From the NCBI RefSeq assembly GCF_000150275.1, contig NW_002060945.1, positions 1,678,199 through 1,742,198 of the forward strand: 64,000 bases of DNA, given 5' to 3'. The translations under genes were made by a program, and so were the position numbers. How positions within the stretch are numbered: position 1 is the first letter of the stretch; the number at the start of each line of letters is the position of its first letter. Positions 1-9,700 of this stretch are shown piece after piece. Below the pieces are notes generated by a model. It searched no databases and was not told where the DNA came from. It worked only from the letters and a program-made list of their open reading frames with translations. Source of the DNA: Trichoplax adhaerens. Taxonomy: Eukaryota; Animalia; Placozoa.

Positions 1-948
1 AAGCGTTAAGAAGGCAATTGCAATAGGGTAGAATAAATAGATAACTCAATACTTTGAAATAATATCGGAATTAATTCTTAAATCATTGAAAAAAATGCAG
101 CCATGAATAATACTTAAATATTTTAAGCTAAATATGATACAGATTAATAGAATAAGATCGGTGACCTTTCATTGCTCGGGCGATTAGATCATTGATATGT
201 TTTATTCAATCCTGGAGATTTACTAACCAGTTAAGATGTAAATTAATCATTAAAAAGTTAACTTCATGCTATCATACATTAAATGAATCATTTACATTCG
301 AGATGGAATCGACCACAGTAGGTAAAAGAGAAGCTAAAGTTCTTATAAATGATGGGCCTTACAACAGTTGTCTTTTTACATGTTAGCAGATTTATCAATG
401 ATGACAAAATCTTTTCCTAACTTATCGAGTTAATATCATCTACCCATACAAGGAGTAAATTTCTGAATAGCAAAGGAAATGGTTTGACACCTCCAATAAA
501 TCTAACTGTTTTATATTCCAAGTTGCACTAACATGAAAAACGAATCACTAGTTGATATCTACTGTATGAATATGCACTCAATTATTTCAACTTGACCCTA
601 GCGGTAGCGAATAAACATGCAGCTGGTAATTCTCGCCAGATTATTTCCATTCAATACATCTTGACTCTAAAGTAGTAAATTCTTAAAACTTTTACTGATT
701 AGCAGTCTTATAAAGCAGCGTAAATTCTACAAATAAAAGCTCCAATCTATCAATGTCATCGTCTCTATTTTTGCATTTCATTTTCAGCCTTTTTGTATTT
801 ATTTCGTAGCCATTGATTTACGAATATCATTTTAATCATGTATGCCTAAACAATTCATTCGTTGTTCATCTATTTTATCGATTATCCTAGAACATAGTAC
901 CAAAATGAAGTAGGTAGATTAACATAATTGTTGTTCATTCTATTGCAG

Positions 949-3591
949 CTTCGGGCCCTCCGTACATATGCCTTTGCACGCAAAGTTGCAATGCAGCATT
1001 AAACGAAAGACGCACATGTACAGCTCAAATTAGCTGTTTTCATAGCATTGTTAAGAATAATGCCACTGGAGTTATTGAAGAAAATCATGGCTGTTTCGAT
1101 CATATACTTCAAAGTAAATTTTGTGGCCGCCAAACTCCACTTTCATCGGTGGTGTGTTGTAAAAGTAATTACTGCAATGATAATGTTCATGGAACTGGAA
1201 GCGATAAAATACGTGCTACACTACCAATTACTACACCTACTACAGGTAATAAAAGAAGTAAATCATTCATTTTTATTTAGTAAAGTTAATTGCAATTCTA
1301 TAGCACTGATTGCTCTTTTAATACAAATTAAATGTTAACTGTATGATTTTATCTTTCCTAATATCACTTTCTAGCTGCCACAACAGGCCAAAGTATTGGT
1401 GGATCGGATGGATTTATGCTTGCGTTAACTATTGTTATTCCTGTCTTAGTATTATTACTAGTAGCTGCTATTGCTGTATGGCTTATACGAAGATCGCATC
1501 AACGCCATATGAGAGAATTATCGTCAAACAATTTGAAAGATCTAGAATTAAACCTTAAAGAGCAAGTTCCTTACTACCCACCAGATCGAACAGCAAGGTC
1601 GACCACAGATTATACATCGCAGCAAACTGGTATGCAAACAGAAATGACTTCAGGCAGTGGTTCAGGAGTTCCTCGCCTAGCTACGCGTACATTGGCTAAA
1701 GATGTTAAATTATTAAATGTTGTTGGTAAGTAGAGGCCAAGATAATTTGAAGTTATTGGCTATAATTATTCCATCGGTTTTGACTTTGCTCTTATAAGGC
1801 ACAAATGTACTCAAAACCCAAAGTGCTAGAAATAGATTTGCATAATACTATAAATCGATTTCGATAAGTTTTCCCATCCTAGCATTAAAGTTGCATGACC
1901 CTAGATAATGTGTATCTTAAAGATTCTATAAATTGAGATCTAGTAATATCAGATAGTATTAAAGATCGAAATATCATAAAGTCTTTCATTTGCATTATGG
2001 AATCTTAGCTCAAAGTTTGCTATATCCATTTCTATAAGATACTGCAGTTGTTATATTTAAGTTATAGAAAACAATGTCGTTCACTTTCGCTTCTAAAGAT
2101 GGATGAAATTGAACCAGTTTCTTGTAAAATGCGATTAGAGAGGCATTTTCTAAAGTGTTATGTACTGTATTCTTTCCCGCAGTATCCATTAAAATCAATC
2201 AGAAAGTTTATATCAATGATTTAAATTCGCCTTTTCCTCTTCATACTGTTAATCGATCATTTTCTCACCTATATCTTGATTTGGCTATGATATTATTAGG
2301 TAAAGGTCGTTATGGCGATGTTCGTAAAGCTAAGTATCATGGGCAAAAAGTCGCTGTCAAAATATTTTCTTCGCGCGATGAAAGATCATGGTTACGTGAA
2401 CGGCACATCTATGAAAATGTCCTTACTCGCCATGAAAATGTACTGTGTTATTATGCATCTGATATGACTTCCAGCCAATCCTGCACGCAAATGTGGCTAA
2501 TGACCCAATATCATGAGAATGGATCATTATATGATTATCTACAACGTCAAGTACTTGACCCATTAGAGCTGCTACGTTTAGCTTACTCGGCTTCAAGTGG
2601 TTTAGCCTACTTACATACAGAAATTGTGGGAACGCACGATAAATTAGCTGTGGCACATCGTGATGTTAAAAGTAAAAATATTTTAATTATGGACAATGGT
2701 AACTGTTGTGTGGCTGACATGGGCCTTGCAGTTACATTTAGTTCTGATCGTGGAATCCTTAATCTCGGCGATAATCCTAAAGTGGGTACCAAACGTTACA
2801 TGCCACCAGAAGTTTTAACTGAACGATTCAATCAAGAAAATTTTGATTCATTCCGCAAAATGGATGTTTACTCATTTGGATTAGTTCTATGGGAGATCGC
2901 TAGAAGATGTAAAACAGAATGTAAGTATTCAATGGACGAGAATGAATGATATGGTGAAACTTACTAATTGAATCATCTTACGCTTAAAATGAATAATTAA
3001 CATCTTCTCATTTCTCCTCTTAATGATATAGATGCCGATGCCGATGAATATCAACTACCTTACTTTGGTAAAGTTCCTAATGATCCTTCGGTCGATGAAA
3101 TGAGAAAAATAGTGGTTGAAGATAAAATAAGGCCACAAATACCCAAAAGACTCAAGAACCATGAGGTAAGCGTATTATTTATTTTGGTCACTCCTAAATC
3201 TAACTGTATATCATACCATTAGGATAGGATAGTTTTCGAGATCCGTTATAGTTTCTATGATAATCCGTAAATTAACAGTCATATTACATCGTTTTTTATG
3301 GATAAAATCATTGAAATTAAATCATCTAATTAGATATACAAGATATCATACTTAATTAAGAAGGTTGATCAGCGATTATGCCTTTTATTAATTGTATGGT
3401 TTCTTTCAATTATTCTATTGATGAAATAGATTTTAAGGCCATACTGTAAAGTAATTCGAGAATGCTGGAGCGAGAATCCAAGTTCAAGATTGTCCATGCT
3501 ACGAGTCAAGAAGACATTGATGAAAATGGTCAATAAGCTAGAATTTCAGAAATCGAAAGATTTGGCATCGAGTAATGAGGCAATAGCGTAA
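949..3591 (+). CDS. ACVR1: TGF-beta/BMP type I receptor Ser/Thr kinase, ALK1/2 (ACVR1/saxophone) subfamily; 5'-partial. Exons 949-1245, 1375-1725, 2300-2920, 3032-3165, 3430-3591
   Basis: Cys-rich ectodomain with CCKSNYCN box, TM helix [25 protein letters not shown] box TSGSGSG, kinase motifs [31 protein letters not shown]45 loop [15 protein letters not shown] matches the ALK1/2/Sax type. All junctions are GT-AG and in phase; stop TAA at 3589-3591. No signal-peptide exon was identified in the window. Confidence 0.93.
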
Positions 3592-6500
3592 AATTATAAA
3601 GGCAGTTGATTCAAATATAAATATTTCAGAATTTTATAGACGGCAGCAATGCATCCATCGGATTCCTCGTTTTATTTCTTTTTAATTCGCTTCAAGCTAG
3701 TCATTATTGAGAACTTGATGACAAATGAAACTTATAACCTATTGTGATAAGTATTGTCGTCGTACCCTCTTTGGGTTACTTCTTCATCTTGCGCGTTTAT
3801 TTACTTCTACCTGATAGTTATTCATTATCAGTTAGAAATGTTAATTTGTTTCATTTTTTTTTTACATTTTTTTGAGGGACTTTTTTAGTTTTTAATTAGC
3901 AAAGCTAAAGTTTTGACCAATGCTTCTATTAATGCCATGTTGTGTTCGAGATAGTAGATAATAAGGCTTCTATAAAGCCATTTCTTACCTTTGTGAAATA
4001 TCTGCACTTTATCAGAGTATAACTTTATACTAGTAGAATTGCAGCCATCTCTACTTTTCAGACACTATTTGTCTGATTTATTGATATTATCTTCCTGTAA
4101 ATACCTTTTATATCGCATGTACATCCTACTTGTCATGAGCAAAAATGTAGCGATAACTAGAAAGCGACAATTGAAAGTGATGAAATTAATTTTGGTAGCT
4201 ATATCATATCGTTAAATGATCTGGTATCGCTGATATTGACATATTAGTGTACATAAATTTGCGCGTACTGTACTGTATATACTTATATGAGTATTGATAT
4301 CTCATATACACGTACGTTTATTCCAACATGTAGATATTTCTTACATGTATAATGCATATAAGATTATGTATACAATCCAATTTGTTTGTATTCTGTTTTT
4401 AACTATTAATGATTAAATAATTTACTACTGATAGAAATCAACCTTGTACAGTACAGTATATGATCAATCCTATAGTTACTTGTAGTTTAGCAAATACTAC
4501 GATAATTACTAACATCTCCAAATTGGATAGTAATCCTGTGATCTTTATTTTTTATGCATAATTCTACAGTATCAGATTCTATTGGTCAAAGCTAACCATT
4601 TTAACTATCAAAGTCGGTGTAAAAAATTGCTTTGCTTGGATTATGATTTGTCTAGGTCAAATTACGATATAAAATTTATAAAAAATATCTCTATAAATTT
4701 CTATATACACATACACATATATATTTGTGTATTCACAATCATCAATCGCTAGAAGATATTCTTCTAGCAAACTAAAGATTTCGAAGTATTTTCCTTCAAG
4801 TGTTACATTTATAAATTTTAAGGATTTTCTTTTCTTTTGTTCAAATTTTTTAAGCAATAGCTCTAATCTTACATGTCATCACAATTTCGCATTGTCGATA
4901 AAATGCACAATTTTGCTAAATTTCCTTACACGCTGTACCTGAATAATTAAAATTGTTTTCATTTCCAACAATAACAGTATATGTTCATGTCTTCAAACTG
5001 AAAATTTTATTTTATCATGAACATAAAAATTAATGTATTATATATTATAATTTGTTTGACTGTATTGTTGGCTTCTTAATTTTCGGTCTGTAATATCAAA
5101 TTAACATTGATTTGTAAATATGTAGCTGACAATCACTATCTTCAGTTGAATAAATCGGCTTTCTTAACAATTAATCACATGATGTTGTCTAACGAAGTTG
5201 TGAAAATTGCTTAAATTTAATTGCTATAGTAGTACAGCAGTATCTAAAGCCTAGATCTGCTGTACTAAATTTAAACTACAAATAATCGGTATTGGCGTAT
5301 AATTTAAACACTGATCAAAATCATTTTGATATAGGTGATTATGTTGCTACATTTTATAAAACATTACTGAGACAAACAGAATCAGGTATCGACAAAACTC
5401 TAAGTTTCTAAGAGAAATCCTATGTTCAATTGTTCATTACTCTTTCAACATTACTACCAATTTTAAGAAAGAAGGATGACATGTGCTATGTATATCAACA
5501 TAAAAGTTCCTTTATCGATATCGGACTTTTGGATAAGTTATGCTGCATAACAGTGAAAAACTCAGTAATATTAAATTGATATAAAATTAGTTTTGGGTGC
5601 TATTTATTATGTAACTATGCTGACAATGTCTGGTTTCTTTTTCATTACTTTTAAGTAGCATTACTATCGATAATTCATGGTTACACGTGATTTTAATTCT
5701 AAGTAGCACTTGATAATGAATACCGGTAATTCTTTAGTATTTACAGTTGTGTGGTTGGTTATAATTTTAACCCAAAGCTTGCAAATGTTAAATGAACGAC
5801 TGCGAATATCTGTTGATTGCACCCCTTAAGTCAAATGGAACAAATTATACATGATTATTGCATGAACGTACTACCGTAATGATAAGAAATTAAAAATGAA
5901 CTGCACTTTAGGAATCGTTTTTAAGCCATCATTTTAGCAAGCACTTAAACAAGATACAAAATGATTGTAATATGAACTCTTTTATTTTCTAATAGCTAAT
6001 ATTTAATACAAGGACATGGCAAAATGATGCCGCCTGTATTTTAATATGGTACTATTAACACTCATATTTTATAATAAATACGTGTTCGCACCAAATCAGA
6101 CAATATGCAGCTTAGCAACATGTATAGGCAAGGTTGCTAACAGCAGTATCATTGCTATATATAAACCATAGAATACTCTATGTACTATCACTGGAATTAA
6201 TCGAAGGGATTACTTTCCAAGCTCGATGGTACAATTTAAAAGATATGTCATTATTAACTAATGTAAGACATTGTTACATCACCAGTCATGAGATAAGTTT
6301 TACGAAGCAGAAGTTGCCGCTGCATCAAACATTATATTCGTCACCTATTTTAACTGCAACACGAATACCCTAACTATGAGAAATTTCTTATCATCGGGGA
6401 ATTTAAGAAAAGTTTATATTACAAGTTCAAATTCCAGTCAAGCTTGTTTCATGCAGAAATATATCCAAAGTAAACTCGCCCATAAGTCCACTCGATTGTT

Positions 6501-6714: not shown

Positions 6715-9700
6715 TTAAATTTTCATATCTCCGCTATGCAACAGACTATGCAATGTCTTCTTTACACGCAACACAGGCAGTCTAGATTCATTGTTGTCCG
6801 ACCAACATTCCCTAATGATCTTGCAAATTGGACTGATGAACTGCATTTCATATAAAAGAACATTTAATTAGGCATTAATGTCTATTTCATCAAAGACGAT
6901 TCAAAACTACACATGCTTCATGTGAAGGCAGCTACAGCGATATGATACCAATATGAAATGGAGATTTATTAATTGACTGTGAACTGTTTTAATAATAACT
7001 TTTAAAATAGGCACACTTACCGGGTGAATCTCCCATTCTTTCTTCAAACGAGGACGTCTCTTACCTACTACAACGACTCTTCTCATCTCTTCTATGCTAG
7101 GATCATGGGGTACCATTTCCGAAAAACAAGGCGCATAATCGTCTGGAGTACCTACAAGATTGTTATACGCGTATAAAGTTAGATTGAAGCAAATACTCTA
7201 CCTTATGAGTTTACACAGATAATATTCAAATTATGAGCGTGAAACCTGTTATGTTACTTCGAGACAAAACTTCCCATAACACTAAACCAAATGAATAGAT
7301 ATCCGCATTTTTAAAAGCGTCGAAGCTTCTCATGTTCAGAGTATCTTCTATGACTTCCGGAGGCATGTAACGTCTTGTGCCAACTCTCTCGTTAGACGGT
7401 ATATCAATAGTATTTGATTTTGAATAATAACACACGGCTAACCCCAAGTCTCCAATTGCACAACTTCCATCTTTCTTTACCAAAATATTATTACTCTTTA
7501 TATCACGGTGAGCAATAGCTGGCTTTCCTACATCATAAAATTTTACTATTATATATCTACAACTAGTTTAACTACATATAACTTACACAAAACGATATAA
7601 TAATATTTAGTGTAATTGTTTCCTATATTCCTTTACCTCTTATCCCTATCATTTCAGTGTGCAGGTGGGCCAATCCACAACAAATTGAATAGGCAATTTT
7701 AAATAATGCTTCTTGATTTAAAGTGGTGTCGGATAGGTAATTAAATAAAGATCCGTTTTCATGATACTCAGTTATTAGCCATAATTCTGTACATGTGCCA
7801 GCGTCCTTGTTATCCGCGGCTATGAACCGAAGAATGTTTTCATGTTGAAGCATAACTACACGATTATAAAAAGTATAGCATTGTATGTCAATTGGGATAT
7901 TGGAGATATCCTTAAAGCAATAGTGTAAATATTCACGTAATACTTTGTCAATTAATCTCTAACTACAGCTTACCAGTTTGATAAATTCTAACTTCTCTCG
8001 ACCAAGAAGCCTCTTCCTTTGATGTGAAAATTTTAACAGCGACATTATCGCCATGAAGATTTCCCAAATATACTGCACCATATCGGCCTTTTCCAATTGC
8101 CGGATACGATATTTTTGTCTTCTTAGCAACCGTCTCTTGCTCCATTATGCGTGAAATACCATTACGTGGGTCCATTGGTAAGGCAGAAGATCCCACACTG
8201 CTTGTTGACGCCCTTCTGCTTTCGGCCACGTTAGTAGGAGGTGGAAAGCAAAAATTCTGAATTGTTGCTAAAATTCGCTTCTTATTGGTTGTACCAGCTT
8301 CACCGTTTTCAAAATCACAGTTGCTAGAAGCGTTGCGTCTTCTCCACCAAATAATAATAACGCCGACCAAGATAGCTAAAAAACCAACTGATATTATAAT
8401 CGCTATTGCACTACTATCGGGATCCGTCGGCATTGATGTTGGATAATCACTCGAGGATTCGGTACTGTTCAATCTAGAAACTGTACCAGCGGTACCTATA
8501 GTATAGTGATATAAACAAAAGCAGACTACAGTAAATTTTTGGACTATAACTACGTTCGTAAGTTCCGTCAAAATTTTTGTTACCAGGAGTAGTAGTTATC
8601 GATGAAGTTCCGTTAATTTTATTGCAAAATTCAGAGTAGCAGCATTTGCCATACTTGGCAGTTAGTAATTTGCACTTTAGAGTCATATGATCTAAAGGAT
8701 CTGAAGGGTTGCCAGAAGTTCGATTAAAGCAGCCAGCTACCCACAGTGAGCCTTCTAATTGTTGGTAGTCGTAATAACAAGCACCGTCAGTATAACAAAC
8801 ATTTCCAAAGCATTGTTGCCCTTCTTCGGATACTCTCTTAATACAATGGCACGGGAAGGCTTTTTTACCTAAGTGGGAGTATAATAGTATAATAAAAAGC
8901 TGTAATATCTAAAAAGTATAAGTATCTAAGAAAAAATGCTAATTCAAAGTGGCATAAAAAAGCGAACTTAAGCTATACTAAAAAACATAATATAATACTC
9001 TGGCTAACAAGGAATGAAGTCTACGATACTGTAAGAGGCTGTAATGATAAAATTTTTAAATCTCTAAAAAATTAGAACTTTGATAGAGTTCATTACTAGT
9101 ATGAATGGTAGATAAACAGTACAATCATACGATATACGTATAATGAATTATACCAGTGTATTACACAAAGTACGTAAAAAGATATAGGGAAATATTATCA
9201 GTAATAACTATCAATAATTCTTATTCTCTCGCAGTAATATGCAAAAGTCGTGCCTCGAATATTAACTATTCGATTGTATTTTCAGAAATCCTTATATATT
9301 CGTTTATACATACGACAGATACAGAAATATTTAATAAGATTTAATTGTATGCTATATCTAAGTAGTCAGCTCTACTGTACAAAGGTTATTTGACCAGTTT
9401 TTATATACTTTTACAGTAGCGTAAAAAAGAAATCCATTGACCCTGAGTACTGTGTAGTATACCGTGCTATATCCGTTCAACATTAGATATAGTTTATATT
9501 AGTTCTAAATTATTTGCTATATAACTGAAAATTGAATACTTAACATTACAGTATTGATAGATACCAATACTAATGATGCATAATATAGTACGCGAAAATA
9601 AGCTACGCATGCATTTACAGGATTAAATTCAACAATAGCAATGATATGGTTTTTAGCAAATGTTTGTTATTATTTTCGATTAATCACAAAGCAATGCCGA

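Follow-up and report, generated by a model that had tools for sequence, protein, structure and literature searches.

An ALK1/2-type BMP receptor of Trichoplax adhaerens with a natural aspartate at the ALK2 Gln207 position, a recurrent state among type I receptors

Introduction

Replacement of glutamine 207 by aspartate in ALK2 (T204D in ALK5, Q233D in ALK3) is the standard engineered substitution that makes a type I receptor constitutively active. A gene of the placozoan Trichoplax adhaerens encodes aspartate at this position as its own residue, so that the protein shares the acidic residue of constitutively active receptors at the ALK2-Q207/ALK5-T204 site. The gene is located in a stretch of 64,000 nucleotides, called the window here and numbered from its first base. 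A sequence-only reading of this DNA had proposed that the receptor might signal without ligand or at a lowered threshold, or that it carried compensatory changes. The question was whether the aspartate is real, and whether it marks unusual signaling or an ordinary ligand-dependent receptor with a differently built inhibitory site.

Gene structure and expression

The gene corresponds to TRIADDRAFT_22452, and the partial database model P0295 (332 aa) agreed with the exons that we found. Five exons lie in the window, and their coordinates and motifs are given in Table 1. Their four internal joints were all taken from spliced RNA contigs and were all of the GT..AG type. At the end of exon B the donor was g|gtaagt, and exon C began after the acceptor as ag|gt aaa ggt cgt tat ggc, with a split glycine codon. 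The string ending in NVVGKGRYG, read earlier from the DNA, was correct at the protein level, but it spans this 574-nt intron.

Table 1. Features of the Trichoplax receptor gene in the window
Feature	Position	Strand	Evidence or remark
Exon A, cysteine-rich ectodomain (ends CCKSNYCN)	949..1245	+	Pfam Activin_recp; RNA joint 1245/1375
Exon B, transmembrane segment, juxtamembrane region and GS domain	1375..1725	+	Translation; Pfam TGF_beta_GS; spliced RNA contig 946-1243/1373-1729
TSGSGSG box, intact; target of type II receptor phosphorylation	1647..1667	+	Translation; gapless ALK2 alignment
VPRL at ALK2 L196-P197-F198-L199 (FKBP12 contact)	1668..1679	+	Gapless alignment
Lys-Asp (aaa gat) at ALK2 R206-Q207	1698..1703	+	Gapless alignment
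Exon C, kinase N-lobe and most of C-lobe	2300..2920	+	Pfam Pkinase; PDB matches; RNA joints 1725/2300, 2920/3032
Gly loop GKGRYG		+	Exon C motif
VAVK Lys codon	2359-2361	+	Exon C motif
L45 loop	2458-2490	+	Exon C motif
Asp-Lys-Leu at ALK2 G328-K329-P330	2638..2646	+	Gapless alignment; second FOP hot-spot position
HRD	2656-2664	+	Exon C motif
DMG	from 2716	+	Exon C motif
Exon D, kinase C-lobe	3032..3165	+	RNA joints 2920/3032, 3165/3430; identical to P0295
Exon E, end of kinase domain, C-terminal tail and stop codon	3430..3591	+	RNA joint; P0295

The RNA contig contained a further 27 nt that mapped 3.6 kb upstream of the window (C1412:1674559-1674585), which identified a 5' exon. This exon carried an ATG with an in-frame TAA before it and a GC donor after it, and it gave the N-terminus MSRTA... 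The full model, including 13 coding bases of the 5' exon, was 1578 nt long, that is, 525 codons and one terminal stop, and the frame was intact. No hydrophobic leader or signal peptide was seen in this 5' exon, which was the only one supported by RNA, and an alternative first exon is possible. A leader-like open reading frame at 754-810 (MSSSLFLHFIFSLF...) was considered and rejected: it lacked a donor of matching phase, and RNA depth over 1-910 stayed at background.

The domains were identified by running Pfam exon by exon. Exon A matched the ectodomain family PF01064 (Activin_recp) with 29.4 bits against a cut-off of 20.9, and exon B, in front of the kinase, matched PF08515 (TGF_beta_GS) with 23.5 bits against 21.3. 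Exon C matched Pkinase with 104 bits, and the catalytic lysine, the HRD and the D-x-G (ADMG) were all present. All three scores exceeded the curated Pfam cut-offs. A single transmembrane segment, lying between the ectodomain and the GS domain, was read directly from the sequence of exon B as a 25-residue hydrophobic stretch followed by RRSHQRH; positions 1416-1727 gave this segment, the juxtamembrane part and the GS region in translation.

Receptor class and the Trichoplax complement

The kinase exon was compared with PDB chains. The best matches were ALK1 (3my0, 8.8e-81) and ALK2 (about 1e-80), and the alignment was gapless over 203 residues. The ALK1/2 score of 273 bits was only slightly higher than those of BMPR1B (264) and TGFBR1 (256). 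The L45 loop was of the SDMTSxxSxTQ, that is, the ALK1/2, type. When a maximum-likelihood tree was built from 124 kinase segments, the Trichoplax row paired with that of a second placozoan, and the next well-supported set beyond this pair (98% SH-aLRT) held all 24 SDMTS-type rows. The earlier assignment to the ALK1/2 type was thus supported by the loop, the tree and the PDB matches.

The Trichoplax genome contained two more type I receptors, one a neighbor on the minus strand at about 6715-8571 and the other on contig C1408, and one ActRII-like kinase. This tally of three type I receptors and one type II receptor agreed with the published count of Pang et al. (2011), who also listed BMP-like ligands and a Smad1/5 (PMC3169577). 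The C1408 paralogue reads KRTFAKEITLVKAVGRGRFG, with glutamate at the Q207 site, so that two of the three Trichoplax type I receptors were acidic there.

The aspartate codon is real and conserved

The aspartate is encoded by GAT at 1701-1703, within gct aaa GAT gtt at 1695-1706. A phmmer search against all PDB chains gave a gapless alignment between the GS stretch and ALK2 (3h9r), which confirmed the proposed placement of lysine at R206 and aspartate at Q207. The chain 6eix, which is ALK2 Q207E, had its glutamate in the same column as the Trichoplax aspartate.

Contigs over window positions 1-3900 were then compared; they came from four public runs of four separate studies, with two organism labels. 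Three DNA or probable-DNA contigs spanning the gene and one spliced RNA contig (1373-1729) showed no variant at 1701-1703, and the sole difference within exon B was A>G at 1564. A low-frequency allele is possible at this codon, because contigs rather than raw reads were compared and contigs drop rare variants.

Another placozoan lineage was represented by the Logan contig L014, which was 88% identical in the kinase. It had the same GAT codon and an identical TSGSGSG box, with NPRL in place of VPRL. Between the two lineages pS was 0.54; pN came to 0.12 for the GS exon and 0.07 for the kinase exon. The low pN relative to pS indicated that the gene was under purifying selection, together with its GS box and a 10-residue block that was identical in both placozoans. 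An artefact, whether from errors in sequencing or assembly, RNA editing of the site or decay into a pseudogene, had nothing in its favor and was refuted by these data: the codon was the same in four runs of four studies and in spliced RNA, it occurred in the other placozoan lineage, the 525-codon frame was intact, and pN/pS was about 0.13-0.23. We regard such an explanation as scarcely credible. The aspartate is the fixed wild-type state in placozoans, and the gene encodes an ordinary BMP type I receptor of the ALK1/2 (Saxophone) class, which is expressed and under selective constraint.

Acidic residues at the Gln207 position of other receptors

A search of 1.84 billion cluster representatives was run with the kinase exon, and in the matches we noted the residue that stood eight positions ahead of the Gly loop. 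Aspartate or glutamate was found in 24 of the 115 representatives with a recognizable GS box (21%). On the tree, the acidic state required at least 18 changes, and 10 independent pairs were placed on well-supported branches. Argiope (D), Potamilus (E), Hydractinia (E) and Macrostomum (E) were among the genera with an acidic residue. A search from an Ancylostoma protein gave nematode SMA-6-type proteins, 34 of which had aspartate and one glutamate out of 41; Tkv/BMPR1B proteins of non-nematode phyla in the same search had glutamine. Drosophila Saxophone, presumably of the same ALK1/2 orthology group, also appears to have glutamine in its wild type, as the engineered activated form carries a Q-to-D change.

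The nematode proteins included C. elegans SMA-6 (Q09488), which reads RTVRQDLTIIKTI|GQGRYGEVRKALYRG and in which the aspartate is D264. Its genetics are known: animals mutant in dbl-1, daf-4 or sma-6 are small, and the long phenotype seen when dbl-1 is overexpressed is suppressed by sma-6 or daf-4 (PMC1112587). SMA-6 thus needs DBL-1 and DAF-4, meaning that a receptor with a natural aspartate is still dependent on ligand and on the type II receptor. The Asp was therefore no sign of constitutive signaling, as invertebrate receptors commonly carry it naturally and a ligand-dependent one is among them. The suggestion that the residue marks ligand-independent or otherwise unusual signaling did not survive this survey. 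The sequence-only reading had itself named a common Asp in ligand-dependent invertebrate receptors as evidence against its proposal, and this is what the representatives and nematode SMA-6 revealed. An acidic residue at this site recurs naturally among type I receptors, and it can coexist with signaling that depends on ligand. A literature search for earlier reports of natural acidic residues at the Q207 site returned nothing relevant.

Residues of the autoinhibitory lock

In the structure of ALK2 with FKBP12, Q207 forms hydrogen bonds with W227 and with Glu-55 of FKBP12, F198-L199 fill the FK506 pocket of FKBP12, R202 and R206 bind D269, and G328 tolerates no side chain (PMC3481300). We compared these positions with the Trichoplax receptor. 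P197, L199, R202 and D269 were kept. The changed positions were L196 (Val), F198 (Arg), R206 (Lys), W223 (Arg), W227 (Tyr), G328 (Asp) and P330 (Leu). The earlier reading had correctly noted an altered FKBP12-contact segment: FKBP12 gating would be expected with Leu-Pro followed by two hydrophobic residues, and the segment here was V-P-R-L, in which the gapless alignment placed arginine at F198, the first pocket residue.

These positions also varied in the survey. The FKBP12 site was canonical in 83 of 122 representatives and non-canonical in 39 (32%), and position 198 was basic in nine of the 122. At position 328, glycine was found in 75 of 119 rows and another residue in 44 (37%), and proline was kept at 330 in 111 of 119.

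The change of G328 to aspartate had been absent from the earlier reading. It was also kept in the second placozoan, and these two placozoan rows were the only ones in the survey with aspartate at 328.

We asked whether the acidic residue goes together with other lock changes. Raw counts hinted that W227 and R206 were lost, and the FKBP12 site degenerate, more often alongside it (Fisher p = 0.036 for the last of these). However, this signal was absent in phylogenetically independent pairs, where the median p was 0.73 for R206 and 1 for each of W227, W223 and the FKBP12 site, in a test of low power with only 10 well-supported pairs. Compensatory covariation was rejected on these 10 pairs, and the proposed compensatory changes did not emerge from them.

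The lock residues bear on a different reading, in which Asp207, Arg198 and Asp328 would loosen the packing between the GS domain and the N-lobe and abolish FKBP12 gating, leaving a leaky receptor with raised basal activity or a lower need for type II input. The roles of these positions in ALK2 (PMC3481300) are consistent with it, as Trichoplax has D at 207, R-L at 198-199, D at 328 and Tyr at 227. All of these residues were kept in the second placozoan, and the glutamate of the C1408 paralogue points in the same direction. However, the TSGSGSG box was perfectly conserved under strong purifying selection, which is expected if phosphorylation by the type II receptor still matters. In addition, SMA-6 has D at 207, no Leu-Pro and a non-Gly residue at 328, yet it depends on ligand and type II receptor (PMC1112587), and the positions concerned vary naturally, with an acidic 207 in 21%, a non-Gly 328 in 37% and a non-canonical FKBP12 site in 32%. 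We consider a leaky or low-threshold receptor unlikely, although it is the strongest of the competing explanations.

FKBP12 of Trichoplax

The FKBP12 orthologue of Trichoplax, TRIADDRAFT_50462 (P0409), was intact, with 113 aa, and was encoded on C1408. It read GTGSVIRGW, compared with GKQEVIRGW in the human protein, so that serine replaced Glu-55. The charge clash predicted between this position and an acidic 207 was thus absent in Trichoplax, because the residue was serine. Among 118 FKBP12-like proteins, the position was Gln in 59, Glu in 52 and Asp in three, and Ser occurred in Trichoplax only. Since Gln was about as frequent as Glu, the position was not a conserved charge, and the idea of Glu-55 as a conserved acidic partner was ruled out.

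These data bear on a co-adapted interface, in which FKBP12 would still gate the receptor and serine at the Glu-55 position would avoid the clash with the acidic residue. That the serine was unique among the 118 proteins and that two of three Trichoplax type I receptors were acidic at 207 would fit with this. However, the frequencies of Gln and Glu at the FKBP12 position did not indicate a conserved charge, the arginine in place of F198 would need to fit into a hydrophobic pocket, and one species pair is no evidence of co-evolution. Such a co-adapted interface seems very unlikely to us.

Discussion

The above results suggested that the Trichoplax receptor is activated in the canonical way, through its intact GS box, and that its autoinhibitory lock is built unlike the vertebrate one. 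This is the most likely reading, and we favor it with moderate confidence. A BMP-type ligand would join the receptor with the single Trichoplax type II receptor, which would phosphorylate the intact TSGSGSG box. The SDMTS-type L45 loop would then steer the kinase to Smad1/5. By analogy with SMA-6, activation would still need both ligand and the type II receptor. SMA-6 is of the BMPR1 type and is not an ALK1/2 orthologue, so that it is a precedent and not a proof. The lock, comprising Q207, F198, G328 and FKBP12 Glu-55, appears to be built differently than in human ALK2, and it is probably less dependent on FKBP12. A literature search for placozoan pSmad or placozoan receptor biochemistry found none.

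Counting against canonical activation, several lock positions differ toward known activating changes, namely Q207D, F198R, G328D and P330L, and the RNA-supported 5' exon encodes no signal peptide. Judged from these residues, the receptor may have weaker autoinhibition or a control that is independent of FKBP12. A broader proposal extends this to placozoan type I receptors in general, whose GS/FKBP12 lock might be much weaker or built differently, given that two of three are acidic at 207 and given Asp328, Arg198 and the serine of FKBP12. Natural receptors resembling caALK, including SMA-6, might then reveal the background residues that make Q207D and G328E harmless. This is speculative, and we give it a rather small chance of being right. 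If true, a weaker or different placozoan lock would bear directly on the way in which FOP mutations activate ALK2.

The gene was already among the three Trichoplax type I receptors of published surveys, and the useful result was comparative. The textbook activating state of the Q207D type is the natural wild type for roughly one in five type I receptor lineages, and a non-Gly residue at G328, the FOP/DIPG hot spot, is likewise natural in many lineages. Caution is needed in inferring the activation state from single residues, as the genetically ligand-dependent SMA-6 is among the carriers. Placozoan ALK1/2 and SMA-6 offer natural backgrounds for dissecting how far FOP-type activation depends on context.

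Comparison with known systems

The closest known systems are human ACVR1/ALK2 and ACVRL1/ALK1 (3h9r, 3mtf, 3my0), which have the same architecture, the same class and an identical TSGSGSG box. The L45 loop resembled the human SDMTSR(H/N)SSTQ. The equivalents of R202, R258 and D269 were kept, and those of R206 and R375 were conservatively replaced by lysine. Unlike the human proteins, the Trichoplax receptor had DMG for DLG and PPE for APE, and no signal peptide was seen in its RNA-supported 5' exon.

The engineered caALK2 (Q207D) and the FOP variants Q207E and G328E/R/W are similar in that the same residues are affected at the same aligned positions (PMC3481300). However, those are single changes in a vertebrate background with the other lock residues in place. 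The Trichoplax residues are a long-fixed wild type in which many neighboring positions also differ.

C. elegans SMA-6 (Q09488) and its nematode orthologues share the natural aspartate (D264 in SMA-6). In the GEVRKALYRG of SMA-6, Arg and Tyr occupied the W223 and W227 positions, as in Trichoplax. At the G328 position SMA-6 also departed from glycine, and its FKBP12 site was degenerate (QAAL). In contrast, it is a BMPR1/Tkv-type receptor with a shorter GS box (SGSGSG) and a kinase with inserts, and its aspartate arose independently on the tree.

The 5' end and gene model of the receptor

The 5' end of the ALK1/2-class type I receptor gene (TRIADDRAFT_22452) was reconstructed from RNA contigs. 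In its first exon, an in-frame TAA precedes an MSRT(A) start, and the donor was of the GC type (cacag/gcaagt). The protein built on this exon is 525 amino acids long, and no N-terminal signal peptide was present in it. Unless an alternative first exon exists, only the transmembrane segment would thus be available to translocate the 120-residue ectodomain. The public model of the gene (P0295), compared with window 949-3591, is partial: its 332 amino acids begin at the Met preceding the GS box. Missing from it are the exons for the ectodomain and the transmembrane segment, both of which were spliced to its exons in the RNA contigs.

Locations of the features examined
Feature	Location	Strand	Remark
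First exon of the window receptor	L013:1501-1535 = G000:C1412:1674559-1674593		Sole RNA-supported first exon; 3.6 kb upstream of the window; joins window 946-949
Asp-Lys-Leu at ALK2 G328-K329-P330	window 2638-2646		Window receptor
Neighbouring convergent gene	window 6715-8571	minus	ALK4/5/7-type receptor by L45 loop
Third Trichoplax type I receptor	L004 = G000:C1408:4979277-4982453	minus
FKBP12 orthologue TRIADDRAFT_50462	L027:1526-1617		G000:C1408
Single-exon FKBP, 118 aa	L018:1489-1845	minus	G000:C1413
ALK-type receptor P0131	L016:2201-3621		Marine eukaryote; JGI metagenome 3300053785

Residues of the GS exon and kinase

A single variant was observed in the GS exon among the contigs of the four sequencing runs. 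It was an A-to-G change at window 1564, found in two of the four, by which the Gln codon CAA of the juxtamembrane segment KEQVPYY becomes CGA, encoding Arg. In the kinase, the Asp at G328, a FOP/DIPG hot spot of ALK2, and the Leu at P330 were both common to the window receptor and that of the second placozoan lineage; neither change was mentioned in the initial note. P330 was retained in 111 of the 119 receptors surveyed.

FKBP proteins of the assembly

Glu-55 of human FKBP12 contacts Q207 of ALK2 (PMC3481300). The Trichoplax orthologue carries Ser in its place, and it was the sole Ser among 118 FKBP12-like proteins, where the position was Gln in 59 and Glu in 52. The single-exon FKBP of 118 residues appears similar to plant-type FKBP12; in its sequence, VHCIGSL...KKFWSTKDPGQKPFTFQVGVGKVIKGWDEG, Lys occupies the match to Glu-55. 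Two very short contigs carry genes that looked bacterial by eye: on G000:C185 (L020, 1128 nt) an apparent Mip-like FKBP, and on G000:C670 (L023, 2077 nt) a protein of about 450 amino acids resembling trigger factor. Both probably derive from an endosymbiont or a contaminant.

Comparison with other type I receptors

The third Trichoplax receptor (KRTFAKEITLVKAVGRGRFG) has Glu at the ALK2-Q207 site, where the window receptor has Asp, and the GS helix of this third receptor is interrupted by an intron after TSGSGAGRPLMV. In the neighbouring receptor, the GS box was degenerate, and the spacing from GS helix to Gly loop was longer by one residue. The metagenomic receptor P0131 has the GS helix TSGSGSGGLRLIRRTLAKDIELL. 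Its R-L and RTLAKD motifs were identical to those of the placozoan window receptor; however, the two were placed separately in the tree despite these common motifs.
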